Assembly (NCBI GenBank): GCA_004431415.1
Contig: QPMI01000404.1
Coordinates: forward strand, 32,974 to 96,973
Length of the DNA: 64,000 nt
Source: Cyanophora paradoxa CCMP329
Taxonomy: Eukaryota; Plantae; Glaucophyta
Direction of reading: 5' to 3'
Part shown: piece after piece, positions 1 through 24,670 of the stretch
Layout: each line of letters starts with the position of its first letter
Position numbering within the stretch: the first letter of the stretch is position 1
Notes under the pieces: model-generated
What the model saw: the letters and a program-made list of their open reading frames with translations, nothing else
The model's database searches: none
What the model was told of the DNA's origin: nothing
Position numbers and translations under genes: made by a program

Positions 1-2742
1 GATCCTTCAGATACTTGTTGTTCGCCTTTGCATGGCGCTTTGAAATCATGGATATACCGCCTCTTATTCCATTCTCAAACATACGGTATATCGACTCCTG
101 GCCTTCGTGCAACAGGTCGAATTCAACCTTCGTTAGTTTAAGAGCAGTGTTCCAGAAAAACCCAGGCGACGACATGTAATAGGCAGGATCCAGACCGTAA
201 GTATCCATTGATTCAGACCGATAGTTCTCGAAGATGTCGGCGAGCAAAGTGATATCGAGAGCCATATAATGAAGCATATAGTCTCGCAAAGTCATACAAC
301 CAAGCGCAGACCATACCCTCTGTGCATGCAGATAATCATCATCAGATATCCCCTCGTTCTTGAGGCTGCTAAAGAATCGCTCCTTCACTGGCAAGCAAGT
401 ATCTTCAAGCTTTGAGTCGTCATCAACGTACTCATAAGGAAAAACACCTTTACGAGTCATCAGTTCAAACATATGCAGCTCAGGGAAAAGCTTCCTAGTG
501 TAAACGAATTTCGAATAATCGGGAGAACCGTCTTCATTTTTTAAGATCAGGCCTTTAGCCAGTTCTTCGAGGCTGCCCAGCATATGCTTTGAGCTGTCTC
601 TGAATTTGTAGATGCCGTAAGTAAGCTGGGATATCTTCTCGCTGTTCTGGAAAATGGCTCCCCAACTATCAGTCAAGAGTCCTTCCGGTCGCATCGTCCA
701 CATCAGTTCCTTATGTTTTTGCTCGATCAGTTCTTTGATCGCAGCCTCGGACAGTGACGCCTGATTTTCAGCAGTGATTATCGGCTTCAAACGCTCGATC
801 TCGTCCTTGACGCGTTTCTTATAATCCTCAGCCGCAGCCTTTCGACGAACCATTCCTTTGATTAAAGCCATGAGTACCAGATGCGAGTCAAAGCCTGTGA
901 GGTTATGAGCGAATATCGATACCTCAATTGACTTTGCCCTGCGACGGTTGCATCCATGACAAGCAGCGCCTAGATATTCCCGGTATCATGGTTGTGATCA
1001 GCTTTTTTCTCCCCATTGATCTCCTCTTTGCAAAGATAACAGTGCGTTGCAGCTCTGTGGAATTCCTTATCGTCCGCAGTCATTACGATTGGCTTTTTCC
1101 GTTTCAACAGTTTCCAAAGTTTAGGCTCAATTTCATCTAGCCAACCCACGAATTCTTCGGCTAAAGCTGCTTCATCAGGACCCGATTTCTTAAACCAAAG
1201 TGGTTCACGCAATCCCTTCCCGATGATCTGGCATCCGATTGCAGCGAGCTCATTCTTTGACAAGTCTACTGTAGTTTTCTTCTTCTTCTTTTGCGAGTTC
1301 GCTTGCGTGCCGCTATCACTAATCGCTTTAAAACGAGTCTCTGTATCAAAGCTGCCAATCAAACGAGCGCGAATAGTCTTGGCGAAATCCATAAACTTCA
1401 AATTATGTTTTCCCTCCTTCGGAAGCTTATCGGCAACAAGCTCAGTTCTCTCAAGACAGCGGTCGAATTTCATGTGATTATCGTATGCAGACTCACTCGA
1501 GAATGCACGCTGGCAGGCGAGGCATATCTTTTTAGCATGCTCATTGGCCGATCTCAATAACCGACTAACGTTCTTAACCCAGACGTAGTGCCCGACGTGC
1601 TCCGCATTTTCTCGAGGGATATACAGCAAAACGATTGCGTCGTTTGAGCCTGAGAAATAAACAAGCGAGACTTTTCCCTCATCGTCATCAGAAGGCATGT
1701 AAATGCACAACTTTAGATCGTTTGCAGCTTCGAAGCGTCTGAAGATATTCGAGTCTAGCGGCGTCGGCTCAGGGATCATCGTCCAGTCGTATTTGGAAGC
1801 GTGCTCTCGATAGTGCGTTAGGTCTCGCGCATCAGCACCTGTGGGGGGAGGATGCAGAGCGGCCAGCACAGCGTACTTGAAGCATTGACCTTCGGGCGAG
1901 TTCGGATTGATTGCGCATTTCTTGTTCTTTATCCAAGTCGGGATTTCAACGGTATTGCGAGCTCCTCCGATTAATCGCAGATGCATGAGTGTATGAACTC
2001 TCACGTCCAGATAAGTCACCAGCTCCCAGCTGTCATTTGAGTGCTCCACAATGTTATCGATTTCAATCATGTGCCTGAGGAGAACCTCGGACAGATCCTC
2101 GCCAGGCAATATCCGCTTGTAATCTGGCTCAAAGATTCTAGGCCTAGAGAACGTCTCATGGACCTCCCCGTTGATGATCTCGATTTTCTTGAATTGACCC
2201 CAGGCAGAAACCTTCATGATGATTCCCTGGTCTCTCTCGTTTGCATCAGCTACCCGCCGAGTCAGATATTCGACGAAGCCATCTCGAAATTCTGAGTTCG
2301 TACGCACGAGTGCTGCGAGAGATTGGACTGGCTGCAGTTCGATAGGAATACGGTCCGTCACTGTATCGGAAACTCCATTCAAAGCAGTCGTTCTCACATA
2401 GAACTGGTGCGATCCGGCGACAACACGCACCTGCTGACCTTCGGGATCTGGTTCGTAGCCAGGTAGCTCATCGTAGGCCATAGCTCGGTCCGCTGCGATA
2501 CTGATTGGCGCAGCTCTCTCTGAGATACGACGCCTCGGTCTAAAGTTCAGCGTTTTCAGAGCGTCGACGATAATCTTGTACTTTTGAATTGTCGTAAACC
2601 TAGCCCGAGAGCTGGCCGCCGCAATTCTCAGAATTTTATTTTCAAACACACTTGTTATAACTCCCTGCAAGCGCAAAGCAACGGCATCCGCGAACAGTCT
2701 CTGCTTGATTTCATTCAACGCCCGGCGCTGTGACGTCGACAT
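1..2742 (-). CDS. Protein-primed family B DNA polymerase (pPolB), 3'-partial, with one frameshift at about 979-981
   Basis: ORF 970-2742 has IPTWIKNKKCAIN..QCFKYAVL, GHYVWVKN, SFDTET (Exo I) and CYLC..DHNHDTG. Adding one G restores GEYLGAACHGCN..FAHNLTGFDSHL. The same frame reads FENGIRGGISMISKRHAKANNK at the window edge, collinear with the pPolB at 35352-39401. Confidence 0.93.
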
Positions 2743-2901
2743 TTCTTTTTTGAATAGAGCTGATATTATTTTTGAGACATCAACGCGCTTCAGCGCCGAG
2801 ATTGCTGGGCAGAAACCGTTCTACTATTAGAGATCGCGATTCATTTAAGTCATGCAGATCACGCTCGGTGAGCGAAAAAGAAACGGGGGCCGGGCTTCGA
2901 T

Positions 2902-3231
2902 CTACGCCGCCGTCTCCCTTGCTGCTAACTTCGCAAGCCGCTGCTTCTCTCGCCATTGCCGGTTGCATTCCTTTGCACGCTCACGCTTCTCGGGGTCGCT
3001 CAGATATTTCCGACGCCTGGCTCGCTCCTTCTCTCGATACTGCTCGATGTTTTGCAGGCGCTTGATCCTTTGCATTTTCAGAAACTCATCATGAGGCATC
3101 ACTTCTTTCTCGTATACCCTTACGACCAGCACTTTGACCTTCCTTGGCTGAAGGCAGGAGTGCGAAGCACAAGTAGCTTCTTGCCTACGGTCATCTTGTG
3201 CCTTGCACTGCTCCATCTCATAGCCGCTCAT
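2902..3231 (-). CDS. Small basic, helical Arg/Lys/Glu-rich viral protein
   Basis: 109-aa ATG ORF; NIEQYREK..CNRQWREKQR resembles NIDRKREQCRNYRRRQR in 39428-39718 of element B. Confidence 0.6.
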   Translation of the reverse strand: MSGYEMEQCKAQDDRRQEATCASHSCLQPRKVKVLVVRVYEKEVMPHDEFLKMQRIKRLQNIEQYREKERARRRKYLSDPEKRERAKECNRQWREKQRLAKLAARETAA

Positions 3232-3331
3232 TATTATCCGCTGAGATTTATTTTTCGAAATATCACGCAGACTTCAACGCCGCGTCGCTTCGCTTGATAT
3301 TATAAGGGAGTGTTTTCTTTAAGTGCTGTAA

Positions 3332-3736
3332 ATGAGCGGCTCTGACAGCGAATCATCTTGCGAAAACAATCACGAGAACACTACGATCGAGCTTAGATGG
3401 CCCGGCCGCACAATCTTCTCTTCCGCTGATCGGATCACATTTGGCACTTACAAAGGGTGGTTTTACAAAGAGCTCGTTAAGCTAATGCCGGATTATTGCC
3501 TGTGGCTGCTGGATCAGCCTTGGCTTCCTCCCTTCGATCGCTCCGTTTTGACAAAGCTTTTAACCGCCGGAGGCAAGGCTCACGGCTTGGCGGGTGCCGT
3601 TTCCGTCCGACAAAGCGTGCAAATGCCGAAGCCGCCAAAGAAGAAGCCTTGTCGACTGCGTAAACACGCTCAAACCCTGAAGCGTTGTAGACCAATATCT
3701 GGAACGAGTGACCCCATTCCAGGTGCAGACGCTTGA
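3332..3736 (+). CDS. Small FGxYKG-motif protein (DUF3820-like)
   Basis: ITFGTYKG..PDYCLWLLDQPWLPPFDR; counterpart in element B at 41079-41456 (ISFGIYKG..PDYTTWLLRQDWLPAFDR). Confidence 0.7.
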   Translation: MSGSDSESSCENNHENTTIELRWPGRTIFSSADRITFGTYKGWFYKELVKLMPDYCLWLLDQPWLPPFDRSVLTKLLTAGGKAHGLAGAVSVRQSVQMPKPPKKKPCRLRKHAQTLKRCRPISGTSDPIPGADA

Positions 3737-4265
3737 GCTCCTCTCGAGTCATTCCTGCATTATATTCATCGAAGCAGCAGTTGAATTCTTTTATGTTGCT
3801 AAGAATGCTGGAAAAGCAGACGTACTCACAATTGCGCCTGATTGTGGGGCTGATCCCGCACAGCCGCTGCGTGGTTATCAGCAGCGATATTCGGTAGTGC
3901 CTTCCCGATGTAAATAGCTTCTGCAGCAGCCGGTTGTTGTGCACATTGATGCTAAAATCGTCAAGCAGATCATCTAAGATAACCGCTGTTATCGGGGCCG
4001 GCTTGCCTCCGGCGATTAAACTTTTTTGACGATGCAGCAGATTAAATACGATCTCTTCTTCCCAGCCTTCACAAATGTTCTCCTTGCGGGTTACATCGTT
4101 CCATTGACCTGTAAAAGCCGTTGAGCTGAAGATATATATCTCGGACAGCTGATCCGCCGTTTTTGCAAGAAGATGCTTCAAATAAGTAGACTTGCCTGTG
4201 TTCGTCGGTCCCACCAGGAGGAAGCGCTTCGGGTGCTCGATTTTGCTTGCATTAAACAGGTTCAT
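3477..4265 (-). CDS. A32-like (FtsK-HerA superfamily) genome packaging ATPase
   Basis: Walker A GPTNTGKST, Walker B VILDD, and the A32 motif LFTSGRHYRIS followed by TTQ. Confidence 0.95.
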   Translation of the reverse strand: MNLFNASKIEHPKRFLLVGPTNTGKSTYLKHLLAKTADQLSEIYIFSSTAFTGQWNDVTRKENICEGWEEEIVFNLLHRQKSLIAGGKPAPITAVILDDLLDDFSINVHNNRLLQKLFTSGRHYRISLLITTQRLCGISPTIRRNCEYVCFSSILSNIKEFNCCFDEYNAGMTREELKRLHLEWGHSFQILVYNASGFERVYAVDKASSLAASAFARFVGRKRHPPSREPCLRRLKALSKRSDRREEAKADPAATGNNPALA

Positions 4266-5495
4266 CTAGAAGTTGCTTACTTTAAGGGTCGACATTTGAT
4301 ACGAGTTGATTACGAGCACGTTGTGTCTGAGGACAAAGAAATCGACGACAGCTGGGGCAGCATTGGTGCAGCCGGACACGGTGAGAGTACAGTAGCTGCT
4401 GCTGCTATTATAAAAGTCGTGATAACCAAGGACAGCGTTGTGAAGAGAGTCTTTGCCGCTCTTGGAGAGAACGATTCCATAGACGTTGGCCTCCTCGAAT
4501 CCTAGAGCAGCATTTCCGGTCGTCGAGCCTCGGTACTGGCTAGGGATGTGGTAGGCAGCGGAAACAAACCCTGAGATCGGTTTATTGCTGATGTCAATCG
4601 CGCGATTGTTGTGATACAATTCAAAGTCTTCAATCTTAAGGGCACTGCCGTAGCCAGCGAACTCGTTATGCGCACGAGTGTTCAGCTTCGTCGCAGCCCG
4701 AACTGTCATCAGCACCGAGTGTACCAGGCCCGAGACGTTTGCAAGAGAGACTTCGACTGGCTGACCAGCGTCATCGGTTTTAAGCTGACGAGAACGCTTC
4801 GTAATCACTTCGGTGAAGGGGATACGGATACCACCGTCGCTGTTCGCAGACTTCAACATAGCCTCGGCATCTTCGGCAGGGATATTGGCGAATGAGCACA
4901 CGAGCGCGGCATCGGACATCGTGGCCACCGCATTAGTATCGGTTCCGATGACAGCCGATGAGCGAAAATCGACTTCAATGCTGGGCATATCGGCGAGAGC
5001 GAGCAGAGGGAAATGAGCATCATCCCAGAGCGAGCAGGGGATCTTTACGACGTACTCCCGGCTGGCGTTTTCGATCTCAAGGGCTCCGTCCTTACCGAAG
5101 CCGTAGCTTGACGCCATTGCCTGCGACTGAGCCACAGAGTTATCGACAAGCGTGGCCACCGTAAGCCAGTCTCCGGGGAGAATCAGCTTGAAGCTCCCGT
5201 GGACAAAGCGGATGCTTTCGATGAAGGCCGAGGCGCCGCAAGGTAGCACCGAGGCTGCGGAACCGCCGGCAACAGCTACCTTGAAATAGAGGGAGACGCC
5301 ATTGAGCAGTTGCTTCCGGGGAAGATCGAATGTAACTGTCTGCGCAAATCCGAAGCTGTTTCCGCGGGGTCGAATTGACTCCAGGAACGACTTGAATTTC
5401 GGGTTGAGACCAACCGAAAGACCTGGCGACATGTACAATTCCGAGCTGCCCTTCGTCACGAGCAGTTCTTTCAGAGTGGTTCCAGCGAGTGCCAT
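4266..5495 (-). CDS. Double-jelly-roll major capsid protein
   Basis: 409 aa, beta-rich. The N-terminus (LKELLVTKGSSELYMSP..FLESI..FGFAQTVTFDLPRKQLLNGVSLYF) follows the NCLDV/Polinton MCP pattern. It lies between the ATPase and penton and is strongly conserved with 41933-43162. Confidence 0.88.
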   Translation of the reverse strand: MALAGTTLKELLVTKGSSELYMSPGLSVGLNPKFKSFLESIRPRGNSFGFAQTVTFDLPRKQLLNGVSLYFKVAVAGGSAASVLPCGASAFIESIRFVHGSFKLILPGDWLTVATLVDNSVAQSQAMASSYGFGKDGALEIENASREYVVKIPCSLWDDAHFPLLALADMPSIEVDFRSSAVIGTDTNAVATMSDAALVCSFANIPAEDAEAMLKSANSDGGIRIPFTEVITKRSRQLKTDDAGQPVEVSLANVSGLVHSVLMTVRAATKLNTRAHNEFAGYGSALKIEDFELYHNNRAIDISNKPISGFVSAAYHIPSQYRGSTTGNAALGFEEANVYGIVLSKSGKDSLHNAVLGYHDFYNSSSSYCTLTVSGCTNAAPAVVDFFVLRHNVLVINSYQMSTLKVSNF

Positions 5496-5543
5496 TTTTC
5501 TTATGCTATTATCAAACGAAAATAATCTTGACGTAATAACAAG
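5496..5543. promoter_or_regulatory. Putative bidirectional promoter between the divergent MCP and penton genes
   Basis: 48-bp AT-rich gap containing TTGACGTA; the equivalent 44-bp gap in element B (43163-43206) contains TTCACGTA. Confidence 0.55.
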
Positions 5544-6422
5544 ATGAAAGTGCGTGTTAATATCGACTCAAGAGAGAGGAGCGAAGGGACTCAGACTAAT
5601 TTCAAATACGTCCTGCCTGAGCCGTTGACTAACGTTAAGTCGGTGCGAGTCGCATCGCTGGAACTCTTTCATAATCTTTATAATCTGACAAGCGGAGGTG
5701 TCATTACAACGTATACCGATGATCCTGCGAACGCCACGAAATCGCGGGCTAATAATTTCAAGGCGGGCGTCTACACGGCAACATCTCTTGTGAATTACCT
5801 GAACGCCATACTGAAGACACAGCAGTACAGCTATAGCGGAAGCACGTTCCAGCTTAAATATCTAGTCGAATTCGATGAGGTAACGATGAGACTGCGCTTC
5901 CTATGCGAGGCCCCTTTCGAGCTTGAGTTCTCTTCGAAAGAATTTGCCGGTCTTCTTGGCTTTCCTGACTCTTTGACCGCCGCTTCTCTGGCGCTGGATA
6001 CTGCTGAGACTATCGGTGGAATTGAATATACCGACGAGATAGTGAGCGACCGTCCTCTCGACTTCCTTTATCACTCTTACTTGCTGCTGCACATCGCTCA
6101 GATTAAGGGTTCGATAAAGACTAGTAATCCGTTTACGACGGGGGCGATTGCTAAGATTAACATCGATAGCAAGTTCAACGAGCTCATCAAGTACACAGCA
6201 GACGATAGGACTCCTGTTTCCGGAATAGCCGGTACCACCGAATTTTCTGAGCTCGATATCAGCCTTCGTTATTTCGATGGCAGCCTAGCGCTTTCAAACA
6301 CTGATTTCTCTCTCATTCTAGAGTTTGAATTCGAAGACAGTGAGTATAGCAAGGCCTCGCTGAAGGGTAACATCCGTAGCTCTAACCTCGAATATCAGCC
6401 GTTCATGAGGACTTTCGCGTAG
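5544..6422 (+). CDS. Minor capsid protein (penton, single jelly-roll)
   Basis: N-terminal VNIDSRER..NF..LPEPLTNVKSVRVASLE..YNL and C-terminal ELDISLRYFDG..DFSLILEFE, the pattern typical of NCLDV/PLV pentons; homolog at 43207-44082. Confidence 0.85.
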   Translation: MKVRVNIDSRERSEGTQTNFKYVLPEPLTNVKSVRVASLELFHNLYNLTSGGVITTYTDDPANATKSRANNFKAGVYTATSLVNYLNAILKTQQYSYSGSTFQLKYLVEFDEVTMRLRFLCEAPFELEFSSKEFAGLLGFPDSLTAASLALDTAETIGGIEYTDEIVSDRPLDFLYHSYLLLHIAQIKGSIKTSNPFTTGAIAKINIDSKFNELIKYTADDRTPVSGIAGTTEFSELDISLRYFDGSLALSNTDFSLILEFEFEDSEYSKASLKGNIRSSNLEYQPFMRTFA

Positions 6423-6457
6423 AGACTCGCGCATTTATTTCTTATTTAAAATAAAAG

Positions 6458-7126
6458 ATGGAAACCAAGCGTGGACGTGGGAGGCCAAGGAAGATCCCTC
6501 TGGATGCTGTCCCTGAGCGAGCTCCTGCAGATATGAGTGCTCGCCGAGTTCAAACTCTCAGTGGAGACGTTGGTACCTACCCCATCGTTAAGCGAGCTGG
6601 ACGATCGGATGAGATCGATTTCGCTGCTGAAGCTGATCTTAACTCGATCTTCGAGCGGGTGCCAAATTCAAGGACTCGTAAGACAAATACTAAGCTGTTG
6701 AAGAAATTAGCTGATTCTGAGCTGTATGTAAGCGATAATGGGAAAACGAAACGCTTCTTTACCAAGTCGAATGGTAATAAACTCACAACGGTTTCTGCTG
6801 TTACGGCTAAGCGGCTGATGGAGGGTATTGCTTTGGAAACGAAACTGGATAATCGAATATTGGAGGATAAACCTTCGAAGCAGAAGATTGAAAAAAAGGA
6901 AGACCCCGCCGGAGCGGAGATTTCAGTTGTAAAGAAAGAGTCAGGTTCAAGCCTGCTCGAGAGGACCGCTGAGCTCGCTGAGAGCAATGCGACAGAGATG
7001 CCCACCGCTAACAAATCGATCCTGCGGATTGCGAGCAGCTCAGAAGAACCCGTCTCGGTTGTCCCAGTCAAGCCGATGGCTGCTGGATTTCGGCCTCTGG
7101 CTGTGATGCTTCGACGTTGGGAGTAG
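6458..7126 (+). CDS. Conserved basic hypothetical protein with N-terminal AT-hook
   Basis: KRGRGRPRK AT-hook; shares LSGD..YP, PNSRT, GIAxETK, PxANxSILRIASSS and terminal RWE with 44144-44752. Confidence 0.8.
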   Translation: METKRGRGRPRKIPLDAVPERAPADMSARRVQTLSGDVGTYPIVKRAGRSDEIDFAAEADLNSIFERVPNSRTRKTNTKLLKKLADSELYVSDNGKTKRFFTKSNGNKLTTVSAVTAKRLMEGIALETKLDNRILEDKPSKQKIEKKEDPAGAEISVVKKESGSSLLERTAELAESNATEMPTANKSILRIASSSEEPVSVVPVKPMAAGFRPLAVMLRRWE

Positions 7127-7454
7127 GAAAGTTCAGGCGTAGGAAAGGACGGTCTTCCTCAGAGATATGCTGTAGGGCGTAGGCATCGCGAGCTCTGGCA
7201 GCGGCCTCGGCAGTGGGATAGCTTCCAATGATCTTACGTTTTCCATTGATTGTCAACTGTGCTCTCCACTTGTTATCGCGTTTATGCAACGACACTCCAA
7301 TGTAGCCTGATGTATTATTCCGACCAATCATCCCGCTTATCGCACGCGCAGTGTGTGAGACAAGAATCAAGTTCTCATCCGCATTGTTTAGTCGGTTAAT
7401 TATGAGCTGTGGTTCATCTAGGAATTCGTTTTTTAAATCGTTACCCCACGCCAA
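7068..7454 (-). CDS. AP2 DNA-binding domain protein (first ATG at 7331)
   Basis: RNNTSGYIGVSLHKRDNKWRAQLTINGKRKIIGSYPTAEAAARARD is a canonical AP2 domain of the HNH-AP2 endonuclease type; upstream INRLNNADENLILVS resembles an eroded HNH. Confidence 0.85.
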   Translation of the reverse strand: MAWGNDLKNEFLDEPQLIINRLNNADENLILVSHTARAISGMIGRNNTSGYIGVSLHKRDNKWRAQLTINGKRKIIGSYPTAEAAARARDAYALQHISEEDRPFLRLNFPTPNVEASQPEAEIQQPSA

Positions 7455-7539
7455 ATTTCGTTACTACACGCCAAATCTCTTTTCAGACGATTTTGCGACT
7501 AGCTATGACCCTGAATGCTCTATATGAGTCAGGTTGCAA

Positions 7540-10059
7540 TCAGACACCGCTAACGTGATGACGAGGGGATGGGGTGGCGGATGACGGCGAAGAGGCCCAG
7601 TCCCGTAGAGTGGGCACAAAGTGGATTTTTTTCCCATCATTGCAGCTTTTCGCGAGGCGATCGGCCTGGTCGTTGTAGCAGTCGTACGCTGGATTGGGTA
7701 CCAGTTCCGCTCCCGGCGCCCGGCGGGCTCGTGCACGGTTTTTCTTGGTCGGGTCAGGGGCAGGGGCCGGTGGGGGCGGTTTTGAGTTCTCTTCGGCGAG
7801 GGTAGCAACCTCAGCGGCACGGAGTGATGTCGGGCGGGTAAGGTTAGAGAGAATTTCGGCGCGAGGCAGATGCAGCCTCCGTTCTCTTTGTAGTTTTCCT
7901 ACAACCTGGGCGAAGGCAGCTTCGTCTGATTTTGGCGGGGGGTCTGCTGCCGGGTCTGGTAATGTGATGAGCGTTGGCGAGGGAGGGCGGGAGTGAGCCG
8001 CGAGGGAGTCATCTTCGCTGTCGCTCGCCTGCGATTTGCCCTCAGGTGTGAAGCGGGTCTCGCCGTCGTCACCGATTTCAGAGTCAGGTGGCGTCGGCAG
8101 CGTGCCACCGCGGTGCGAGGTTCGCCGGCGCCGACTGCCGAGCGTTGGAACAAAGGCTGTTTCTGGAGTCGCAAACGCGAGCTGATCCGGGGGAAAGGGT
8201 TCGGGGCCTATTTCAGTGGTGCCGAGGTAAAGGGCAAGTACAATGAAATGGGTGTAGGTCCGTAGTCGTTCCGGGAAGTCCCGAATGAGTGTGCTGAGGC
8301 GCTGCGTCGACGGGTCTCCAGAGAGGACGTAGGCTGTCATGAGAAGAAGGATCCCGCAGGAGGAGCGGTCGATCTGAATGGGTCCGTCGCAGGCATCTGT
8401 CGAGAAGGATGTCCATAGAGGCGGGGCGAAGGGTTCGTCATCCCGTCGAAGCCAGATTCGGACAAGGTCAAGGCCTAGGGCAGTCCGGTCGGGTCGGCTC
8501 CGGTTCCCGCCGTCGTAGATTCGGATCGAGCGTTGTCTGGGGGCGATGAGAAGGAGGACCCAGTGGTCGGCTGGGTCGCCTTCCCGGTGCGGGAGGCGGG
8601 ACGGGACCAGAGCGGGGAAGAAAACCATGCGATACGACCGTAGTGGTCGTGGTGGCAGATAGTGCAGTGTTTGTGCTGGGTTAAGAGTATGGGGTTGGGC
8701 GCCGACACCAGCTGTGGAGATTGCAGTGGGGAGGAAGCAGACGTCGCCCCCGCGGCACGCCGGTCGGGCTGCCAGGACGTCGAGGAAGGCATCGACCACC
8801 CGATCCGGGACTCCACGGGGAAGAGCGCTAGCGATAGTCCTATAGCTAGTTCGCCCGCCGCTCGGTGCAGGGGGTAGGTCTGTGTATAGGCAGGCAAGGT
8901 CTGCAACGTAGAGCGCCGGGGCAGGCGAGCGGGATGGTCGGCTCTCCGGCGTAGTGTGAGCTCGCGGGTATCCAATGATGGCGTGTTCCGCTGCGTGGTC
9001 ACCTCGGTTGAGGGCTGGGCCCCAACTGATGCGGATTTGGGGAAGCAGGGCTTTCTCGGCCTGCGAGAGAGCTCGAGGGAGGGGCGGCACACGGGGTGGT
9101 AGCTGAGGGCTCGTCGCCAATGTTTGCACAGATGACACCGGTGGCAGCGTGGGAGGAGGCATTGAGTCCGCTGCGGGCTCTGGTGAGGACGTGTCGGCGA
9201 GCTTGGGTGCCGATGCAGGGCTGGGTGCGGGTGGCGACGGGAGCTCCGGTTGTAACGTCGTCACAGTTGGCGGGTCCACGGCAGAGTGGTGGTCATGAGT
9301 GGGCCCGGACCAGTCAGCGGGAAAGGAGGGCTTCGTTGGCTTGTAGCCTTGTCCAGTGAGGCTGAGATCTGAGAGGTAGAGAGCAGCGGCGTACCGGAGC
9401 CGGATTGCCGGGAGAATTGTGCGCGATAATTTGCCGGGGGCAGTCCCAGTCATGCGTGAGATGTAGCCCGATGCAATGTAGTCCGCGGCCGCCAATACTA
9501 ACAGGGCGTCTTCACCGTGTTCTGCACCGGGCCAGCTCGGCGAGTTGAGGGTGCTAGCATCGCAGAACCAGCGAGGGCATTGCGGGGCTGGGCCCCCGGC
9601 TTGCTCCTGCCATGCATCTGCCCAGGCTTGAAGCTCGGGGAGGACATCGGAGCAGGGCGTGTGGGAGCCGTCAATAACCCTTATAACTCGGGTGCGTGGA
9701 GAGATAAGCGCCAGGCGCCAGTGGCGAAGGAGTGCTCGACCATCAGGCCCAGGGATGGGCGGGAGGGGGAGCAGGAGGTAGTCAACGTCGTTCGGGCGGA
9801 GGGTCGCTTTGTTTCAGCAAATGAACTCTGGAGGGCAGTCGGGGTCCAGGAGGGCCCGTCTGGCTGCACGGGGAGAGACGAAAATGCAGCTGGGGAGGCC
9901 CGGCGTCCGTGCCCGTTCCTGCGCAGCTCGGCGGGCGACAAGGCGGAGGAACGCAATTACGTGCTGCTCGTGAAGGGGCATTTCTTGTAAGAGGAGTGCA
10001 GATGCGGCTTCATGGTCGGAGAGCGTGAGGGGGTTACGCATAGATGCCGCCTGCACTTG
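7540..10059 (-). pseudogene. Retrotransposon polyprotein part 3: two tandem Ulp1/C48-like protease domains and the RNase H C-terminal helix
   Basis: Same frame as part 2 across TAG 10060 and TGA 9814. Contains DRVVDAFLDVL..HWVLLLI..IRIYD..QIDRSSCG, a second copy HVIAFLRLV..HWRLALI..IRVIDG, and YNDQADRLAK near the end. Confidence 0.8.
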
Positions 10060-13000
10060 CTAGCGTAGAGTTGGCGGTAGCGGCGCGGCGCGGAAATTTG
10101 GGTATGCGGCTGAGACCCCCACGGTGGGCGGTGGCGGATGGTATGCACGGATTGCGTCTGCTTCAGTGAATTTGCCATGCGAAGGCCGTTCGGGCAGGAT
10201 TGGGCTAGGAGTGTTGGGCAGAACTGATGGGTGGCATAAAGTGCAGAGGGGGGCTGGGCCCGCTCGCCAATCCTGAAGTACAAAATCAAGGGAAGTGCAC
10301 GGGCGGTCCGGGTCGCAGCGGTGATACGCTGCAGTGGGGTCGTTGGGGGACAGGGGCAGGTCCTCGTCCCAGTGCCAAGCGGGGTGCTCAGCCGGGAATG
10401 AGCCATTTTCAGCCATCTGCCATCGAGACGGCGAGGCGAGCCAGGTAGTCTGGTCGCGCCGGGCCCCAGTCGAGGACGGAGGGCCAGTGAGGGGGTAATC
10501 CCGGCGTGCATTCGCGCGGACTGCGAGTGCATCCCAGTACTCCGTGCGTGACGGGCCCGTTGTTGGGAGAGACACATCGACTTCGGGCCAGAATATTGGG
10601 TTAATGGGGGAAGTGCAGTGGAGACTGATACGAGTGCGATACCGAATCGGAAGGGCGGCAAGCCAGGGTGCGTAGCGGCGTAGGAAGTCAGCTGGAGCTG
10701 TAATCACGAGAGACTTATCAGGCAGCACTCGTGTGTGGGCCCTCGGGATGCGGATAGCAGTTTCCCAGATTATGCATTGCTCGGCAGGGTGTGCTGCCAG
10801 ATCGGGGGCAGCTGCAGCAAGGTCAAGTAGGAGGTGGTGCGGCGTTCCAAATTGCGCAAGTTCTATGATTTCAGGGTTCGCCAAGTATTGTTCGTATTCG
10901 CCAAGCGTTTGGGGGGCAATATAAACGTGGGCACGCCCCTCGTCATCTGGGGGCCCATCATGGAGGTAGGCAATGGGAATATTTAGTCCTCCATAGACAC
11001 TGCGATATTCCCGGGCTGCAGCCTCCGATGGAGAGGGCTGGCTGCGTGGACGCGGGGCGGGGCCAGGGCGCGCGACATAGGGGCGGGTGGCGTCGAAAGG
11101 CATACGTGGCGGGGCAGCTGCAGCCCTTGAGGGCTGGCGGGTTAGTACCGGGTGGGTTAGTCGGGTCTCGAGCTCTGTTATAGGGATGGTTTTCGGCTCG
11201 TGGGCTGGGGTCCAGGTTAGAGTCGGGAGGGGGGCGTAGCCAGCGCGTTCGCGGGCTGCAACAATTGCACGTATTGCAAGAATTGTGTCGCAGTATGGGC
11301 TGCGGAGAATTTTCCGAAGGAGAAGAGGGCATCCCGTGAGGCAAAAGCGCAGCAGAATCGAGATTGTGCCTTTGCTGTCTAGGGTGAGGGTGCCTCCCTC
11401 CTTGCCGAGGTACGTGAGCGCGAGCATGACAGCCTCGAGCTCGCCGAGGCCGATGTTACATTGGACTCCACTGACACGAGCTGAGAAAGTAACTGTGGAG
11501 AGCAGCTGAGGGTTACGGGCTGCAGGGATGACAACTCCAAACGTCGTTCTGACTGTGGATTTCCCTGCGTGTCTAGTGCTCCCGTCTGTCCAGATTGAGG
11601 TTGCGAGGGCATCGGATGCTGGCGCGTGTGTAGCCTCGATCACCCGAGCTAGTGCCGCCGGCGGGTTCGTTGTGTTCCGGTGGGCCGATGGAATAAGACA
11701 TGGATTTAGGTCTTCACGTCGCGCGGAGGGGGGGGGCTTTGCTTCAGCCACGTCGAGCTGCACTGCTTCGTCCTGGAATTCTTCCCACCAGGGGGCCAGC
11801 TCGAGCCAGATGGAGCGGGCGGCCCCCTCGGGTACTTCGTAGTAAATCGAGCGGGGCTGTGCGTGTACCTCGGCGCCCTCTAGATCTGAATCCGAGTCGT
11901 GCACCGGCCGCGGGGGCAGGGATCGGATTCGGCGTGGGCGGGGGCCGGAGGCTAAGCGGAAGTCTTGGCGGTTCGTCGGAAGCCCGACAAAGGCTAGCTT
12001 TTTGTTTAGCCTTGCGAGCCGTTTCTGTGCCGCAGTCGAGAGTCTTTGGGTCAACGTCGGGTTTGCAGGTGGGAGAGCTTCAGAGGCGGGCTTGTTTCGT
12101 TTGTTGAGCGCCCGTGGGGGGACGAACGGCCCGTCGGCTGCACGACGAGAGCGCTTGGAGGGATGCCCCGGCGGTCCTGCATCAGCGATGCGGGCCACTC
12201 GTACATGGGTGGCCCATTCGTGCCATTCGCACACATCAGTAGCCAGGCCGAGGTGCTTGTGCAGGCCAGCGCTGCCGCAGTATGATGGCGCTGGACAGGG
12301 GACAAAGCAGGCCTTTTCGTCATCGGTCCCTGCGATAATTTCATTGCGTTCGCGGAGCTCAGAGTCGTCGAGCCGCCAGTGGCGCAGGTGAACCATGTAG
12401 ACCTTTTCAGTCTCCGCTGTTGCCTCTGGATCAAGGTTCGCAGCCTCCGGGTCTGCTATCAGGGGCGTGGATACGACCTCGGCTAGGTAGCCCGCTGAAG
12501 TCCAGACCAGTGTGCCGGGGGTGAGCTTGGCGATGAGGGGGCTAGCGCGGACTGCTTGGCGAATATCAAGGGGACGGGAGAGGAGGGGCATGCAAAATTC
12601 TGCGCGGATCGGGCGGGGCCAGGTGGGGCCCTCCGCTTCGTCAAAATGTGCGCGTTCAGACAGTTCTTCGCGTAGCCAATCCCACCATTCCGGCTGTTTG
12701 CGTTTTGTGTAGGGGACGCGGCAAAGCTGCCAGAGCTCTGACCAGGTTGGGATGCAGACTTCGCCATGAATCTGAACTGTGATGTGGGCCATCGTGAAGA
12801 GGCCACATTCCATGAGAAAGACGCCAGCCTTGGCTAGAAGGGCGGGAGAAAGTTGGGAAGCCAGGATGAACCGACGGTCAAGTTTAGCTTCTGTCCCTGA
12901 GAGGCCTAGCACCCATCCGTTCGCTGCAAACGTCGTCCAGTTGGCGAAGGCATGATCAGACGCGGCTAGAGCCCGTGTAATGGACAGGCACAAATGTGTG

Positions 13001-15051
13001 TCCTCTTGCCGGGAAGTTGGTGTGAAATTCGAGTATTCGTAGGGGAGCAGGCAGAGCCCGTGTCGGGCTTGGGTATCCAGTATGCGTTGGCGGTGGAGCT
13101 GTCCAATGAGGGAGTCCGGGAGAAAATAAGCTGTCTCGAGCCGGAGCCGCTCGTCGAGTGTCTGAGACTGGAGCAGGAGCGTGGAGACATGGCGCAGCTG
13201 GTAAAGAAGGTAGAGTGCTGGTGTACTGGTTGACTTAGCGTGGCCTGCGGCGTGTCTAAACACTTCGGACCAAACTCGCTCCAGCTGTGCACAGCGGGCT
13301 GCACTGAGCGTCATGATTCGCATCGGGTAGGCCAGTTTAGGATAGATAACGCGGTGTAAAACAGTGCGAAATTCGTCAACGGAGAGATATTTTGGGCCGA
13401 GGAGGTGCATTGCGGTGCGTGCATGTGAGAGGAGGAGGCGAAATTGGGGCCCCCAGTCAAGCGATGCTGTGAAAAATACTCCAAGGATTCGGAAGGCATC
13501 ATTTGGTTGATGGATGGTGCCGATGGGCTCGGCTTGGGGTCCCAAGCCCACTTTGATCGGTGCAAGTGTAATCGGGCGCAATGGCCGCCAGTCCGGTCGC
13601 CAGAAAGCTACCTCGCTCTTCTTTGCATTCAGGCGGATGTTATGAATGTGTAGGAATTCTGAGAGCCACTGAAAGAAGCGCTGGAGGGTGTGTGGGGAGT
13701 CTGCAAACATCGTTGTATCGTCCGCGTAGGCCAGGATTGATAGGAACGAGCGGGGCCCAGCTGGAACTTTATAGGTCTCCCCGGGTCGCGCGGCGCCTGT
13801 GGTGCCTGGGACAAAATCACGGAGCTTCCCGGAGGAAGTACCTGGGAGGGGGCCCATGCGGTACCCAATATTGGCTGTCCGTGCTTCTTCATCGATTGCT
13901 GTGAGCACCGTGTCATAGAAGATGCGCCAGTGGAGGGGGGCTTCAATCCCTCCCTGCGGCAGGCCGCAGCGAACTTGGAACCATTCTGTACGGCCATGGG
14001 GCGTAAGGATGGCGGCCGTGCGGTGTCGAGCTGCGTAGGCGTGGAGTTGGATGTATGCGCGGCCAGCCGGGTGCTCGTGCATGCGTAGCCGGCGGAAGCT
14101 GGCTTCCATGCTTTCCCAGGAGACGCTGTCGTACGCGCTAGCTATGTCACCGAGGCCAATGTATATTGGTTTGCGGTGGTCATGGGCGTCCTCAAGGGCT
14201 GCGCGGACCGCGTACAGGACTGGGTCGGTAGATTCGTGTCGACGGAAGCCGTAGTTGGGTCCTCGCAGGATCTGGTGGTCTTCCAGACGGGAATCGAGCC
14301 TGTCGGTGAGGATGCCCGTGACAAGCTTCCAGAGAACTTCCTGTAGCGTGATTGGGCGGAGGGAGCCTAGATCAGTAGCGTTGTCGCGTTTGGGGATGGT
14401 AAAGACCTGTCCGCGGAGAAGATGGTCGCATATATGGCCTTCAAGCGTGGCTTTGACGATCGCCTTTATGACCTCGCGGGAAGTGGTCCAGAAGTCGGTA
14501 CTGGCCCATGCATCAACTTCGGCGTGGCTGTGCTTAAGGGTGAGAAGCTGACGATCAGCTTTTGAGAGGTGCGGGGGGAAGAATATCATTTTAAGCATGC
14601 CATTAGTGAGACCCGACGGGCCGCCGGCTCCGTCTGATGTGGCTGCAAGGCGGGCTGAGAGTTCGCGATCTTCTGGCATGTCCGTCATGCCGTCGAATGC
14701 AGCAAGCTGAACGTGTGGGAGGGGTGCATATTGGCGGATCCAGTGTTCCGCGCGTTCGGGGTGCAAGGCCAGGCGAGCACGGATGCGCTCTGGTGTGACG
14801 GCGGCATCACGTGGGTACCAGAATCTCTCATCGAAAAATTCTTTATATTCGGTCAGCACCGCTTGCGGCGCCGTTATGACGTGCACGATGCCGTCCACCA
14901 GTTGTGAGGTACGGCTTGACAGTGCTTCTGAATTTGTCGAACAGAATCTGGATCGCTTGCCCCATCGAGGACGAGCGGGAGAGCATGTGACGTCGGGCAT
15001 CGATGTCGCGGGATAGTTTGTCGGTCTGGAAGCCCCGGCGGTGTGCATCAA
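10060..15051 (-). pseudogene. Retrotransposon polyprotein part 2: non-LTR reverse transcriptase plus N-terminal part of RNase H
   Basis: RT motifs IPK, LRPITL, YGFR, DIASAYDSV, GLPQGG, LAYADD, LNAKKS, ILGV; RNase H motifs IWTDGS, GELEAV, LDSK, WTPAH. Confidence 0.95.
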
Positions 15052-18000
15052 GAGCTGCCATATTTCGGTTTGTCCAGGAGGTTAAAGCTGCGAAGTAGCG
15101 CGACCAGCATTCTTCAGGAGTCGCACGGTCGGAGGCGCCTGGGAAAATTGGGGCAGCTTCTAGGGGGACGGGATAGTAATGGAATTCCGTCTCTGGGCGC
15201 TGAGCTACTTCAAAATTATGGAATTCAACCGTCTGTTCGAGCTGTGTAAGGTAGTGTAGTGGGGAGGATCTGGAGCCGTCGGCACTGTCAGGAGCTAGTG
15301 CCGGTGGGGGGCCAGACGTGTCGGCGTGGCGTGCCCAAGCTGAGAGGCATCCCTGGACCTGAAGCAGGATGCCGGAGTCCTGGTCCTTCGCTCCTGGGGT
15401 GAATATGCTGGGGGTCCGGTCGCGGCGCTGGCGGTATTGGAGGAGCTGGGCCTCACTGAGGTCGGGCGACTCGGCCGCGTATTTAACCGCTTCCACGAGG
15501 GCGTGCATGAGCGTGCGGACTGCCCGCTTGACCCGCCTAGGGTAATTTGGATGCGTCCGCTGTTGTTCCGTGGGGCGGAGGATGAGGTTGACTTGGTGCG
15601 AGGATCGGGCCAGCCAGGTCTGGACGTGCATCTTTGCCCTGACGCGCGTCTCTGCCGGTTGCGCCAGGTAGGTGAAAGCTGGGGGAAGGGGCTGGGTTTG
15701 AGGGCGTACGCTGGGGCGGACCGCGTTCCCTTCGTTATCTAGCGAGGGGAGAAGGCCCTCGATGTTGAACGAGGTGATCACGGGGAAGTGGTCAGAGCGG
15801 ATTGCAGTCAGGACTCGGGCAGTGTAGAGTGTGCGAGTAGCCTGCATGCGCGCTGCCAGAGCTTCGGATGCAAGAATCCCGTCCAGTCGCGCAGCCGTGT
15901 GGAGGCGCTGCGGGGCTGGGGTGTCTGGGCCTTCGTTCTGGGGCCGAGCAGCTTTAACCCAGGTTATATCGCCTGGAGTACCGAGGTCGATCAGCCGCCA
16001 GTCGTGGAGCAGCGTTGTCCAGAAATCCCGCTCAGGGGCTGATTTGCGGGCTCGGGCCGTGGAGATGCGGTCGCGGCGAGGGTCATGGACCGCATTGAAG
16101 TCACCCATTAGCACCAGTTCGGTGTGTTTGAAATCCTTGTGTCGCCAGTCATTCAGGACAGTTGTCGTTAAATATTCCATGACGTCGTCTAGTTCGCTCT
16201 GGGGAAGTGAGCGATGAGGCATGTACACGTTCAAGACAAGGAGCCGCTCGGCTGGAGATTTCTGATAGAGAACGCCAATTAGACGGCCGGGGACCGCATA
16301 CGTTTTGACAATGTCGTGTTTGAATCGGTTGTGCACCCAAAGGGCCACGCCTTTGCCTCGTCCGGCCTCGTCGGCGTTGGTGGGGCCTGAAACGTAGAGA
16401 GTGCCCTCGGGGCGGATGCGGTGTATGGTGCGTACAAGTCCTTGCATTCGTGCGCCTGGCAGGCTGAGTTCTTGGAAAGCTACGAAGTCCGCGGCCCAGG
16501 TCCCCACGGTTTCGTTGAGGGCCGCTAGAAGGCGGTCTGCCGGGTCACGTAAGGTCTCGAGCAGTCCCTGGACATTCCAAGTGACGCAGCGAATCTCAGA
16601 GTTGAGCCGTGGGCAGGCCGCAGAGGGGCTGCTCGAGGTCCGGCCCCGGAGGACGAAGCGGCGCTCATCGGTCGAGCGAGGGTATATGGCGGTGTTCTGA
16701 TAGAAATTAGGCGGGTACAGGTCCGCAAGCGAGAGGGGGGCTTGAGGCGGCGGCTGGTCGCTCGCAGGGGCGGGGTCGGTGCTGTCGTCGTTTATAATTA
16801 GGTCTCCGGATTCCGGGGGGTCCGCTTCGAGGTCCCCCCACGGCGCTGGTAAGGGGCCGGCGGGGGCGTCGCTGTCAGATGAGTGAAGCGTGGCCATGTC
16901 CGAGTGCCAATCGTCGGCTGAGAGGCCTTGTTCTCCGCTTGCAGAATTGAGGAAACCGGGACGCAGCCCTGCAAAGGGGCGGCGCGCCGTTTTAGTCGGG
17001 GGCGGGTATGAGGGGCCGGCGTCGTCGGCGTCGGCCGCATTGTCTACGTCCGTGTCCGTGTCCTCGTCTTGGTCTGGCCATGGAGAGATCGAGATCTCGG
17101 GGGGTGCGCAGTCGTCGGGGTCCGAGTCGTAGGGCTCGAGATCTGCGGATCCAGACGCCCGCGGTCGGGTGTCGACTAGGTCAGGGAGTTCAGCTTCGAA
17201 ATCGGCAGTGTCACGTGCGGCGAGTGCGGTGGCCATCGATGCTGCTGCCGGTACAAGCAGGGCCGCGGTCGCCGACGACGGGCCCGCACGCGTCGATTCA
17301 GGGCAAGATGCTGGGGCTGCGAGAGATGTCTCAAACAGGAGGAAGAGTATAAGCAAGGATAAGAGGCGCCTGCGAAGTGCGCTGTGCGTCAAGCATGCGC
17401 GGCCGACAGCGTGTGTCCGGTTTGGAGTACTACAGTGGGGCGTGATTCGGGCGGCGCTCATCGTGAAGGCTGCGGCGAGCGTTGTCGCAGCATTCTGGGC
17501 ATCACCAGCAATTGCTCTTGCCAGGGAGAGGCTAATGCGGAGGGGGTCCCGCAGCGGGGCCCAAGCCAGCACCGTTATCACGTCTCCTGCTGTAAGGGGT
17601 CTCAGGGGGGGAGGGCGGCAAGGGCGTGGCGCCCGCAAGGCGGGACAGGGGCGCCGCGGGCTCCTAGGGTAGAGCAGCCTTGTGACCGCACGGGCGGCCA
17701 AGCGACGTGCGAGGAGCACGAGCGTAACGCAGGCGTAGAGGAGAAGCAAAATTGTCCAGGTTATCAGTGCACTGAGGGCGTAGGCGGGGAGCGTGAATGC
17801 TAGGAGCGGCCCGATGGCGACTGGGACGAGCAAATTCTGCGCCCTTGGCGCAAGGAGGCGTAAGCTCATCGCTGCCTGTGCAGAGGCCAGGGCGGTCGCG
17901 GACACTGCAAGGATGGCTGTGAGGCCGGCAAGAGGCAAGAGTCCGTAGAGGACTCGCGACGGGAGGCCAGCGTCCAGCTTGGAAACCGCTGAGCGTGTGC

Positions 18001-18889
18001 ACGCGCTGGCGTGTACGGCGCCTTTCTGGAATCCGAGCGCAATGTGTCGTCGGGCAGCCGCTGCGGACAGGGAGGCGAGCTCGAGGAGAGAAGTGGCTCG
18101 GTTTAGGCGTCGGCTGAGGGCCACGGCCGCCGCATCAGTGAGTCGCCAGCGGCGGCGCCATATCTTGGTCAGAGACCAGAGTAGGCGGTCCCAGGGTGAG
18201 GGGCACCAGTCTGCTTTGGCTTCGCGGGGCCGGGGGCCGAACCAGAGGGCGCTGCGAGGGGGGTTGAGAGTGGCTCTAATCGTGGAGCGGATAGAGCTGC
18301 CGAGGCGCCGCAGCCTTTCAGCTCCCTCGTCGATGCCTGCCAGCGGGGCGAGGGCTACTAGACGAAGGAGGAGACCCCCCAGGGAGAGTCCGGTCCGAAG
18401 ATGGGAGGCCGCGGGCTTGCGAGGCAGGTCTCTGGGCGGGGAGAGGAGTAGCTGCGCGCGGCGAGGGGACAGCACTTGCAGGCGGAGGGTCGATCCGTGC
18501 CCGTCCTGTGCCTGCAATTGTGCATGTGAAGTCATCAAATTCATCGATATAGGTGCGTCCGCGTTGAGTAGCCCGAGCAGCCGGCTAGAGAAGGAGAGCA
18601 GGAGCTCATTTTCGAGGTTGTCCCCTACACGGGCTTGAGAGGAGAGGTACAGCAGAAGACCGTATAGGCGGAGCATCGCGGGCAAGATCTCGAGGGCGAC
18701 TAGATATAGAGGCGTCGAGTAAAGAGGCCAGGCAGTATCCCGGGGGCTACGGGCTTCAGGGCGGGGATGGTTGCTGTAGCTACATTCGTGAGCCGAGCAG
18801 TGAAAGTCTGGCCGAGGCCTCCGACTGGTGGTGTACTCATGCATGCGCACGTGTTTGTGCCCGCTTCGAGTTCCGGTGCCAGCGCGCAC
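14843..18889 (-). pseudogene. Retrotransposon polyprotein part 1: hydrophobic N-terminal extension, acidic linker, apurinic-like endonuclease (APE)
   Basis: RCVTWNVQGL, ADFVAFQEL, LNVYMP, LMGDFNAV, ARLDGIL and RSDHFPV are the EEP/APE motifs. The start codon is uncertain (18889 is GTG). Confidence 0.9.
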
Positions 18890-19886: not shown

Positions 19887-20667
19887 GGAGTACGGCCTCG
19901 CTGGCGGAACCGCTGCGAGATGGCCCGCTGGCGCGTCGCGCTGCGGGCCCCGTGCTCGGAGTTCCGGGGACCGCTGGCGCGGCGCGCCGCGGTCCCGGCC
20001 TGCCCCGCAGGCCCCGGCCGCGCCCGCGGCCGGCGAGCTCCACCCCGGAGTACGGCCTCGCTGGCGGAACCGCTGCGAGCCTCGGAGATGGCCCGCTGGC
20101 GCGTCGCGCTGCGGGCCCCGTGCTCGGAGTTCCGGGGACCGCTGGCGCGGCGCGCCGCGGTCCCGGCCTGCCCCGCAGGCCCCGGCCGCGCCCGCGGCCG
20201 GCGAGCTCCACCCCGGAGTACGGCCTCGCTGGCGGAACCGCTGCGAGATGGCCCGCTGGCGCGTCGCGCTGCGGGCCCCGTGCTCGGAGTTCCGGGGACC
20301 GCTGGCGCGGCGCGCCGCGGTCCCGGCCTGCCCCGCAGGCCCCGGCCGCGCCCGCGGCCGGCGAGCTCCACCCCGGAGTACGGCCTCGCTGGCGGAACCG
20401 CTGCGAGATGGCCCGCTGGCGCGTCGCGCTGCGGGCCCCGTGCTCGGAGTTCCGGGGACCGCTGGCGCGGCGCGCCGCGGTCCCGGCCTGCCCCGCAGGC
20501 CCCGGCCGCGCCCGCGGCCGGCGAGCTCCACCCCGGAGTACGGCCTTGCTGGCGGAACCGCTGCGAGATGGCCCGCTGGCGCGTCGCGCTGCGGGCCCCG
20601 TGCTCGGAGTTCCGGGGACCGCTGGCGCGGCGCGCCGCGGTCCCGGCCTGCCCCGCAGGCCCCGGCC
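19887..20667. repeat. 160-bp GC-rich tandem satellite, segment 1
   Basis: CGGCCT(C/T)GCTGGCGGAACC recurs at 19893, 20053, 20221 (the preceding unit has an 8-bp insertion), 20381 and 20541. Confidence 0.97.
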
Positions 20668-20699
20668 TATATCTGCACTTTTGGAGTATTGCAATACCT

Positions 20700-21050
20700 T
20701 CGACAGAATCTGCGACAGAATCAGTCGATAAAATTCGACAGAATCGGTCGACCGATTCTGTCGCAGAATCAGTCGATCGACTGATTCTGTCGATCGACTG
20801 ATTTTGTCGACCGATTCTGTCGCAGAATCAGTCGATAAAATTCGACTGATTCGGTCGACCGATTCTGGCGCAGAATCAGTCGATCGACAGAGTTGGTCGA
20901 TCGACTGATTTTGTCGACCGATTCTGTCGCAGAGTGAGTCGATAAAATTCGACAGAATCGGTCGACCGATTCTGTCGCAGAATCAGTCGATCGACTGATT
21001 CTGTCGATCGACTGATTTTGTCGACCGATTCTGTCGCTGAGTCTGTCGAT
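20700..21050. repeat. Left subterminal array (107-bp period, palindrome-rich)
   Basis: GTCGATAAAATTCGAC at 20724, 20831 and 20938; built from GATTCTGnnnCAGAATC, GTCGATCGAC and GTCGAC. Confidence 0.92.
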
Positions 21051-24400: not shown

Positions 24401-24670
24401 CGCGAGGCTCCGCTGGGCGGGGCGGAGGCGCGGCGGGCGGCGTCGGCGGCTCGCCGGGCGGGGCCGAGGCGCGGCAGGCGGCGGAGGCAGCTCGCCGGGC
24501 CGGGCGGAGGCGGGCGGGCGGCGCGCGGCTCGCTGGGCGGCCGGAGGCGCGGCGCGCTGCGGCGCGACTCGCCGGGCGGGGCAGAGGGGCGGCGGGCGGC
24601 GGTGCGCAGGCGCGGCGGCCGGCTGCGCGGCTCGCGGGGCAGGGCGGAGGAGTGGCGCGGCGGAGGCTCG
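21482..24670. repeat. Left arm of long internal inverted repeat
   Basis: Reverse complement of about 29603-33157; mirror-image ORFs (e.g. 22197-22580 minus vs 32011-32475 plus). The inner part is a GGCGCGGCGGGCGGC-type minisatellite. Confidence 0.93.

Follow-up and report, generated by a model that had tools for sequence, protein, structure and literature searches.

A 64,000-nucleotide stretch of Cyanophora paradoxa CCMP329 DNA (contig QPMI01000404.1, positions 32,974 to 96,973), referred to below as the window, was analyzed. At about 8-18 kb the window holds an apurinic/apyrimidinic endonuclease (APE)-type retrotransposon that lacks long terminal repeats (non-LTR), i.e. a long interspersed nuclear element (LINE). 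Here the DNA has 59-64% G+C and a strong excess of G on the plus strand, unlike the left flank, which indicates that the minus strand is the coding strand. Downstream of the reverse transcriptase (RT) the element encodes two homologous domains of the Ulp1/SENP (C48) protease type, of which the downstream one looks catalytically competent and the upstream one has lost the catalytic set. The same two domains are found, in the same order, in P0001, the only relative known. The features of the element, in window coordinates, are as follows:

14843-18889, minus strand: open reading frame (ORF) with the APE-type endonuclease
10060-15051, minus strand: ORF with the RT
15788-16585, minus strand: APE-type endonuclease domain (Pfam Exo_endo_phos, 45.2 bits, E 1.3e-11), in a frame that differs here from that of the RT
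14903-14907, minus strand: frameshift between the APE frame and the RT frame; P0001 is continuous there
13552-14397, minus strand: RT domain (Pfam RVT_1, 75.8 bits, E 5e-21)
11161-11631, minus strand: putative RNase H, N-terminal four-fifths, with DGS, E, DS and H motifs
10100-10900, minus strand: conserved region with Cys/His motifs, 32-46% identical to P0001 residues 1861-2110
10060-10062, minus strand: in-frame TAG that ends the listed RT ORF, private to the window copy
9364-10035 (approximate), minus strand: upstream Ulp1-like domain, an apparent pseudo-protease
9814-9816, minus strand: in-frame TGA in a variable loop of the upstream domain
8827-9363, minus strand: Pro/Ser-rich linker between the two Ulp1-like domains, as read from the translation
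8134-8826, minus strand: downstream Ulp1/SENP-like (C48) domain with the full catalytic set
7648-7680, minus strand: putative last helix of the RNase H with a YNDQ-D-LAK motif, kept in P0001 within a poorly conserved tail
7632-7633, no strand: end of the similarity to the family, abutting a virus-like element

On the minus strand a single frame of 2,504 codons runs from 15051 to 7543, and its only internal stops are TAG 10060-10062 and TGA 9814-9816. Its portion from 14907 to 7543 bears the RT, the putative first part of the RNase H and both Ulp1-like domains. Since the frame is the same throughout and is broken by just these two stops, the listed ORFs of 80 and 651 codons are continuations of the RT frame. 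APE and RT lie on the same strand in the window and within one ORF in P0001, and the RT core is 62-72% identical between the two. Among RTs of solved structure the nearest were R2 proteins (E 1e-11, 47 bits), against about 1e-4 (24 bits) for L1 ORF2p. The conserved Cys/His region is about 270 residues long (P0001 1860-2130), carries HRC...C-LCHP and is situated between the N-terminal part of the RNase H and the first C48-like domain; profile searches with 10100-10900 gave no family match. At its other end the APE ORF has about 760 codons ahead of the start of P0001 (16606-18889, minus strand). This part is Leu/Ala-rich with hydrophobic runs resembling membrane helices, and the strand bias continues to about 18 kb; it may be either an N-terminal part belonging to the element or GC-rich DNA with an open frame.

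P0001 was the sole relative returned by an exhaustive HMMER search of 1.84 billion protein cluster representatives with 8134-9813 as a query (E 2.2e-31, 34% identity, residues 2242-2754 of 3,720). It is the only member of its cluster and is encoded by a single uninterrupted ORF on an 11.9-kb metagenome contig of the European Nucleotide Archive (ENA). Two Joint Genome Institute (JGI) metagenome scans and two IMG/VR scans yielded no further relatives, and a look-up of the exact product of the window ORF gave no match. Word-index protein searches with the window piece, an alignment of the downstream domain and P0001 2150-2790 also found no relatives, a result that says little because the index is length-limited. 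The parts of P0001 are arranged in the following order:

Residues 13-292: APE
Residues 733-1037: RT
Residues 1629-1757: RNase H-like D, E, D and H motifs
Residues ~1860-2130: conserved Cys/His region
Residues ~2170-2390: upstream C48-like domain
Between its two C48 domains: linker
Residues ~2540-2760: downstream C48 domain
Residue ~2926: YNDQ-D-LAK motif
The ~780 further residues to the end: C-terminal stretch with a CxxC...HxxxC motif

Between 16606 and about 7640 the window is colinear with P0001, and this colinearity spans the change of frame and the two stops. In these comparisons the pieces flanking the stops were searched separately, and the stops were read through as X for pairwise alignment only. 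The retention of a dead and a live domain as a pair at only ~34% identity suggests function rather than accident, and the tandem is probably a working module of this retrotransposon family.

In the downstream domain His is located at 8563-8565 (HW), Asp at 8512-8514 (YDG), Gln at 8374-8376 and Cys at 8356-8358, the last two forming Q-x5-C. The H-D-Q-C order and spacing are those of canonical C48 proteases, and all four residues are invariant between the window and P0001. When excised, the domain passed the Pfam cut-off for Peptidase_C48 by a borderline margin (22.1 bits against 20.7); P0001 scores 16.7 bits. A profile built from the domain and its relative matched SENP1 in the PDB (E 0.004), placing HW, YD and Q...CG on the catalytic residues of SENP1, and SENP8 came next (E 0.02). 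A language-model search returned C48 proteins as 27 of the 30 nearest clusters (score 0.95, 184-187 shared features). Judged by its sequence, this is a catalytically competent-looking C48 domain, as claimed in the initial annotation, which had credited the downstream copy with the full catalytic set.

The upstream copy was found with the sequence quoted for it in that annotation, split by TGA 9814-9816 and possessing neither the Gln nor the Cys. In the window it has His at 9721-9723 and Asp at 9670-9672, and another Asp (9508-9510) occupies the position of the Cys. P0001 likewise has Asp at the Cys position and no Gln; the His and Asp of the window are replaced there by Arg and Ala. The remark that the upstream copy keeps His and Asp is thus correct for the window and fails as a description of a conserved feature. 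With Asp in place of Cys and no Gln in either sequence, the upstream domain is a pseudo-protease in both lineages.

The relationship between the two domains was supported by BLASTP, with 12 of 21 residues identical around the His motif (E 1e-5) and a colinear N-terminal helix, and by hhalign (84.6% probability, E 6.8e-6, 113 columns), which paired the catalytic Cys with the Asp. The upstream fold was modelled from the intact P0001 orthologue, the window copy being broken by the TGA; the AlphaFold alignments were only two or three rows deep, which makes for weak models. The model of the P0001 domain had a predicted local distance difference test score (pLDDT) of 52.5, with a core of ~70, i.e. 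moderate confidence. Its top 50 Foldseek matches were all CE-clan proteases (SENP2, E 5e-4). VIA-align placed SENP5 at Z 11.1 (113 residues, 3.6 Å) and SENP1 and SENP2 at Z ~10, and every one of the 34 chains at Z 8 or more belonged to the CE clan. A shape search of the ESM Atlas gave C48 clusters at template-modelling (TM) scores of 0.52-0.53, and 25 of 30 language-model neighbours were C48. A Pfam search of the upstream segment gave no match; profile matches in the PDB were weak (E 0.05-0.9) and all C48, among them NopD (E 0.05) and a fungal Ulp1-like protease. Sequence and model together argue that the upstream segment has a CE-clan fold and is a C48 homologue without the catalytic set. The two domains are a tandem duplicate of old date, retained in each of the two known lineages. 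A tandem of homologous C48-type domains downstream of the RT, one live-looking and one dead, had been proposed for this locus. It is supported by the conserved order in P0001 and, contrary to the outcomes named in the initial annotation as refuting it, by the CE-clan matches of the upstream model and the profile similarity of the two domains.

The pair lies between motifs that resemble those of RNase H. Four of these motifs form a contiguous group:

11584-11586, minus strand: RNase H-like DGS motif
Within 11428-11448, minus strand: RNase H-like E motif
Within 11365-11385, minus strand: RNase H-like DS motif
11197-11217, minus strand: RNase H-like W..H motif

The fifth, YNDQ-D-LAK, follows about 1,175 codons after the His motif. 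The D-E-D-H-D series is in order and is kept in both the window and P0001. W..H and YNDQ-D-LAK align to residues 117-125 and 130-139 of Escherichia coli RnhA, including N130 and D134 (E ~0.2 each), two segments that are four residues apart in the bacterial enzyme. Profile searches of Pfam, NCBIfam and the PDB did not match RNase H, and a complex prediction for the N-terminal part and the putative last helix scored 0.00, which is evidence neither way. On motif evidence, the C48 pair likely lies in an insert of roughly 1,170 residues that separates the last Asp helix of the RNase H from its His motif.

To compare the window copy with others, Logan contigs from three of the organism's DNA runs were aligned to 7300-11700. 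At least two contig forms, ~85% and ~99% alike, cover the stretch in the three runs, and their flanks at 7632/7633 vary; the element family is multi-copy in the host genome. All contigs of the three runs have G at 10062, which gives CAG instead of TAG. Among the nine listed positions where every contig differs from the window, six differences are synonymous. The window copy belongs to a subfamily of near-identical copies, from which it differs by slight mutation. Three of the nine, in the interval 7825-11459, are codon-final G-to-A changes adjoining a C (the codons TCG, GCG and CCG of the contigs read TCA, GCA and CCA in the window), a pattern expected from deamination of methylated CpG.

At the frameshift the two tblastn pieces, one in frame -1 and the other in frame -2, meet at P0001 residue 566, with residues 6-566 aligned onto 16606-14903. 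At the opposite end, similarity to the family stops at 7632/7633, where loose contig ends occur in the three runs and depth drops below ~7594. Several continuations were seen at this point; the in-frame translation of one is a peptide similar to the P0001 sequence that follows the LAK motif. Since other copies continue past 7633 as P0001 does, the window copy lacks the equivalent of about the last 780 residues of P0001 together with the 3′ end. With the TAG, the frameshift and the 3′ truncation, the window copy is dead. The TGA at 9814 lies in a low-confidence variable loop of the upstream domain. The initial annotation described that domain as hidden between stop codons, and this description did not survive as a property of the element: frame and homology carry on through the two stops, P0001 is open, and TAG is CAG in the other contigs. 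Given the decay of the window copy, the apparent concealment mostly reflects damage.

Differences within the family show signs of constraint on the coding sequence. Of 29 that were listed, 20 fall at third codon positions (binomial p 9e-5). Most of the listed indels keep the frame, either singly (+9, -6 and +6 nt) or by compensation (-2, +1, +2 and -1). Two replacements were listed, each changing the length by 6; in one subfamily contig 180 nt are swapped for 174 nt in the linker. A single 22-nt skip (8463-8486) was also listed. The third-position and indel evidence covers the tail as well as the linker and the beginning of the downstream domain.

We give somewhat better than an even chance to the explanation that the locus is a recently decayed, 3′-truncated LINE copy of a family whose intact members encode, in a giant single ORF, a dead and a live C48 domain with a SUMO-type function. 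The intact ORF, as in P0001, reads APE, RT, putative first part of the RNase H, Cys/His region, dead C48 domain, linker, competent-looking C48 domain, putative last RNase H helix and Cys/His C-terminus. The downstream domain would be a thiol isopeptidase for a ubiquitin-like modifier (Ubl), most likely of the SUMO type, that acts in trans on host or element proteins and helps retrotransposition. One example would be the removal of SUMO marks by which silencing is supported or repair at the insertion site is regulated. Catalysis would have been lost from the upstream domain, where Asp stands in for Cys, Gln is missing and the His and Asp are not conserved; this domain would serve as a non-catalytic binding or scaffolding partner, and the stop codons would be damage to the window copy, outside the mechanism. 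This assignment of a trans-acting Ubl isopeptidase and of a binding or scaffolding partner draws on what is known of C48 enzymes and of transposon proteases (PMC2836005, PMC4640811, PMC8557442). SUMO-directed counter-silencing by the element, suggested in the initial annotation, is plausible. We regard as unlikely a more elaborate version, in which the pair is a two-part SUMO tool within the RNase H: the dead domain would be a binder of SUMO, or of chromatin or repair factors modified with it, the live domain beside it would remove the mark, allowing the element to escape SUMO-dependent silencing or steer repair where it inserts, and the RNase H would assemble around an insert of ~1,170 residues.

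A number of observations weigh against the retrotransposon C48-pair explanation or parts of it. Conservation in the family is a single comparison of two sequences, the window and P0001. The split of the RNase H consists of two short motif matches, neither of them significant alone. Inside the longer ORFs the Peptidase_C48 score of the downstream domain is 19.5-19.6 bits, below the cut-off. The AlphaFold2 model of that domain, made from a two-row alignment, has a pLDDT of 43.7 and is too poor to confirm the fold; the best Foldseek rows on this model, NEDP1 and SENP1 (E 0.07-0.14), were not used as evidence. TGA 9814-9816 is absent among the best-supported all-contig differences listed, and other copies may share it. 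Finally, a putative RNA run (X21) provided no contigs on the stretch, and the sampled words were in none of the four runs listed.

Among the other explanations, the one that we consider unlikely rather than improbable is that the live C48 domain is a cis-acting protease cutting the ~3,700-residue polyprotein after Gly-Gly and releasing functional pieces. Adenovirus, African swine fever virus (ASFV) and poxvirus CE-clan proteases cut polyproteins after Gly-Gly sites. The ORF is unusually long for a LINE, and viral CE-clan proteases are among the fold matches, lower down at Z 4.7-6.4; the best matches in both sequence and fold are nevertheless SENP, Ulp1 and NEDP1, not the viral families. The Pro-rich linker that follows the live domain is poorly conserved except for a GSRR...GG-T(L/I) motif, present in both lineages some 45 residues beyond the domain (window ~8080-8130, minus strand; P0001 ~2775-2800), which is a possible Gly-Gly cleavage site. 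However, the GG motifs of the two lineages fall in different columns of the global alignment, no second conserved GG site was found outside the folded domains, and a cut inside the insert would put the RNase H pieces on separate chains. The suggestion that the pair is a captured host Ulp1 passenger without function, with the upstream copy further decayed, would fit the lack of catalytic residues in the upstream domain, the losses differing between the lineages, and the frequency with which transposons capture host gene fragments, including many Ulp1 captures (PMC2836005). We find it improbable: at ~34% overall identity the lineages still share the module and its order, along with the catalytic residues of the live domain and the C-terminal helices of the dead one; across the module, the bias toward third positions and the indels that preserve the frame speak for selection on the reading frame; and C48 is still the fold predicted for the dead domain.

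Lower still we rank the idea that TGA 9814 is regulatory, so that read-through or termination sets the output of the protease module, as in some retroelements. The TGA, unlike the TAG, is missing from the listed all-contig differences, so another contig form may carry it. This absence from the best-supported differences listed is weak evidence, and it has to be set against the sense codons of P0001 throughout, the position of the TGA in a variable loop within a domain instead of between domains, and the other clear damage to the window copy. Chance resemblance of an unrelated upstream segment to C48, produced by GC-rich low-complexity sequence, we think very improbable indeed. It would account for the lack of a Pfam match and for the weak PDB profile matches (E 0.05-0.9), but not for all of these being C48 proteins, nor for the hhalign result with the downstream domain (E 6.8e-6), the 25 C48 proteins among 30 language-model neighbours or the exclusively CE-clan membership of the 34 chains at Z 8 or more.

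The element with its dead and live C48 pair can be compared with known systems. In NeSL and Utopia, an Ulp1-like protease also occurs in a non-LTR retrotransposon ORF; there it is single, N-terminal and upstream of the RT, in elements with a restriction-like endonuclease (PMC4640811). The window element differs in having an APE and a protease downstream of the RT, duplicated with one copy dead and apparently within the RNase H. Membership in NeSL/Utopia was rejected on account of the APE and of the protease position. Closer in layout are the Dualen/RandI LINEs (Dualen: Kojima and Fujiwara 2005, as cited in PMC9977147 and PMC8557442), which have a Josephin-type cysteine protease downstream of the RT and also a restriction-like endonuclease (PMC9977147, PMC8557442). 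They share with the window element the APE-RT-RNase H plan and a deubiquitinase-type cysteine protease downstream of the RT in the same giant ORF; a further point of likeness is that, of the RTs with solved structures, those of the R2 type come closer to the RT of the window element than L1 does. The protease is C48 in the window element and Josephin-related in Dualen; identity with Dualen, considered on the supposition that the Dualen enzyme is Ulp1, was rejected in view of the Josephin type given in PMC9977147 and PMC8557442. No restriction-like endonuclease was recognised in the C-terminal 900 residues of P0001, profile sensitivity for this kind of domain being low; the C-terminus of P0001 shows only the CxxC...HxxxC motif, and the window copy lacks that region. 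Membership in Dualen/RandI, compared by features, was rejected because the protease is C48 and no restriction-like endonuclease was recognised. The initial annotation had called the position downstream of the RT unusual. A protease of the Josephin type already occupies it in Dualen; here the pair appears to be located inside the RNase H.

The cellular SENP, Ulp1 and NEDP1 proteases give the best sequence and fold matches and share the H-D-Q-C order and spacing of the downstream domain. Identity to them is only 10-20%, and here the domain is embedded in a retrotransposon polyprotein. The position that we take to be that of the first Trp in the SENP 'WLND' is not Trp in the window or in P0001. 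The viral CE-clan proteases (adenain, ASFV pS273R, poxvirus I7L) are comparable in that a CE-clan fold lies within or beside the polyproteins of selfish elements, and differ in their much weaker fold matches (Z 4.7-6.4) and lack of sequence signal. Ulp1 domains also occur in DNA transposons, namely Mutator-like elements (KI-MULE), Ginger1 and CACTA (PMC2836005, PMC8978399). There too a mobile element has taken up a C48 domain, which is suspected of a role in transposition or in dealings with the host; these are, however, class II elements in which a single domain is fused to or located beside the transposase, and those papers describe no dead and live tandem.

To the left of the element, window positions 1-7632 have lower G+C than the element and contain virus-like genes; this part resembles a Polinton-like virus or a similar integrated element. 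Its features are:

7068-7454, minus strand: ORF with an AP2 domain (Pfam AP2, 36 bits)
4266-5495, minus strand: 409-amino acid capsid-like ORF, by motif reading only
3477-4265, minus strand: ORF resembling a packaging ATPase with Walker A, by motif reading only
970-2742, minus strand: 590-amino acid ORF with a DNA-polymerase-like exonuclease motif, by motif reading only

The remainder of the window is rich in repeats. A 139-bp satellite of ~85 copies and ~79% G+C occupies 46569-58415, and a 318-bp array is found at 61630-63983. A 160-bp array stands beside a palindrome-rich 107-bp array at 19887-21050 and again at 33685-34710, in the opposite order around a 12-kb stretch, and a third 160-bp array is present at 45261-45883. 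GC-rich 41/40-bp arrays at 23607-24606 and 29638-31065 are mutual reverse complements. The 160-bp/107-bp and 41/40-bp arrays may be the ends of a large element or of a palindromic structure.

The recruitment of proteases of this kind is a recurrent theme, Ulp1, OTU and Josephin types being repeatedly found in transposons (PMC2836005, PMC4640811, PMC8557442): Ulp1 in NeSL, Utopia, MULEs and Ginger, OTU in Helitrons and Josephin in Dualen. In the literature examined, no function has been demonstrated for such deubiquitinase- or deSUMOylase-type proteases recruited by transposons. Full-text searches for this combination, in a literature of incomplete coverage and with Repbase outside it, found neither an APE-type LINE with a C48 domain, nor a dead and live tandem, nor an insert in RNase H. 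The family described here adds to the theme an APE-type LINE with C48, a conserved pairing of pseudo-protease and protease, and an apparent giant insertion in RNase H. The window copy itself, being dead, matters only as a record of this family. Since public data yielded a single relative among 1.84 billion protein clusters, which makes the family extremely rare there, the host genome is the main source of copies for evolutionary tests. The pairing of a dead with a live domain would offer a built-in contrast between binding without cleavage and cleavage.

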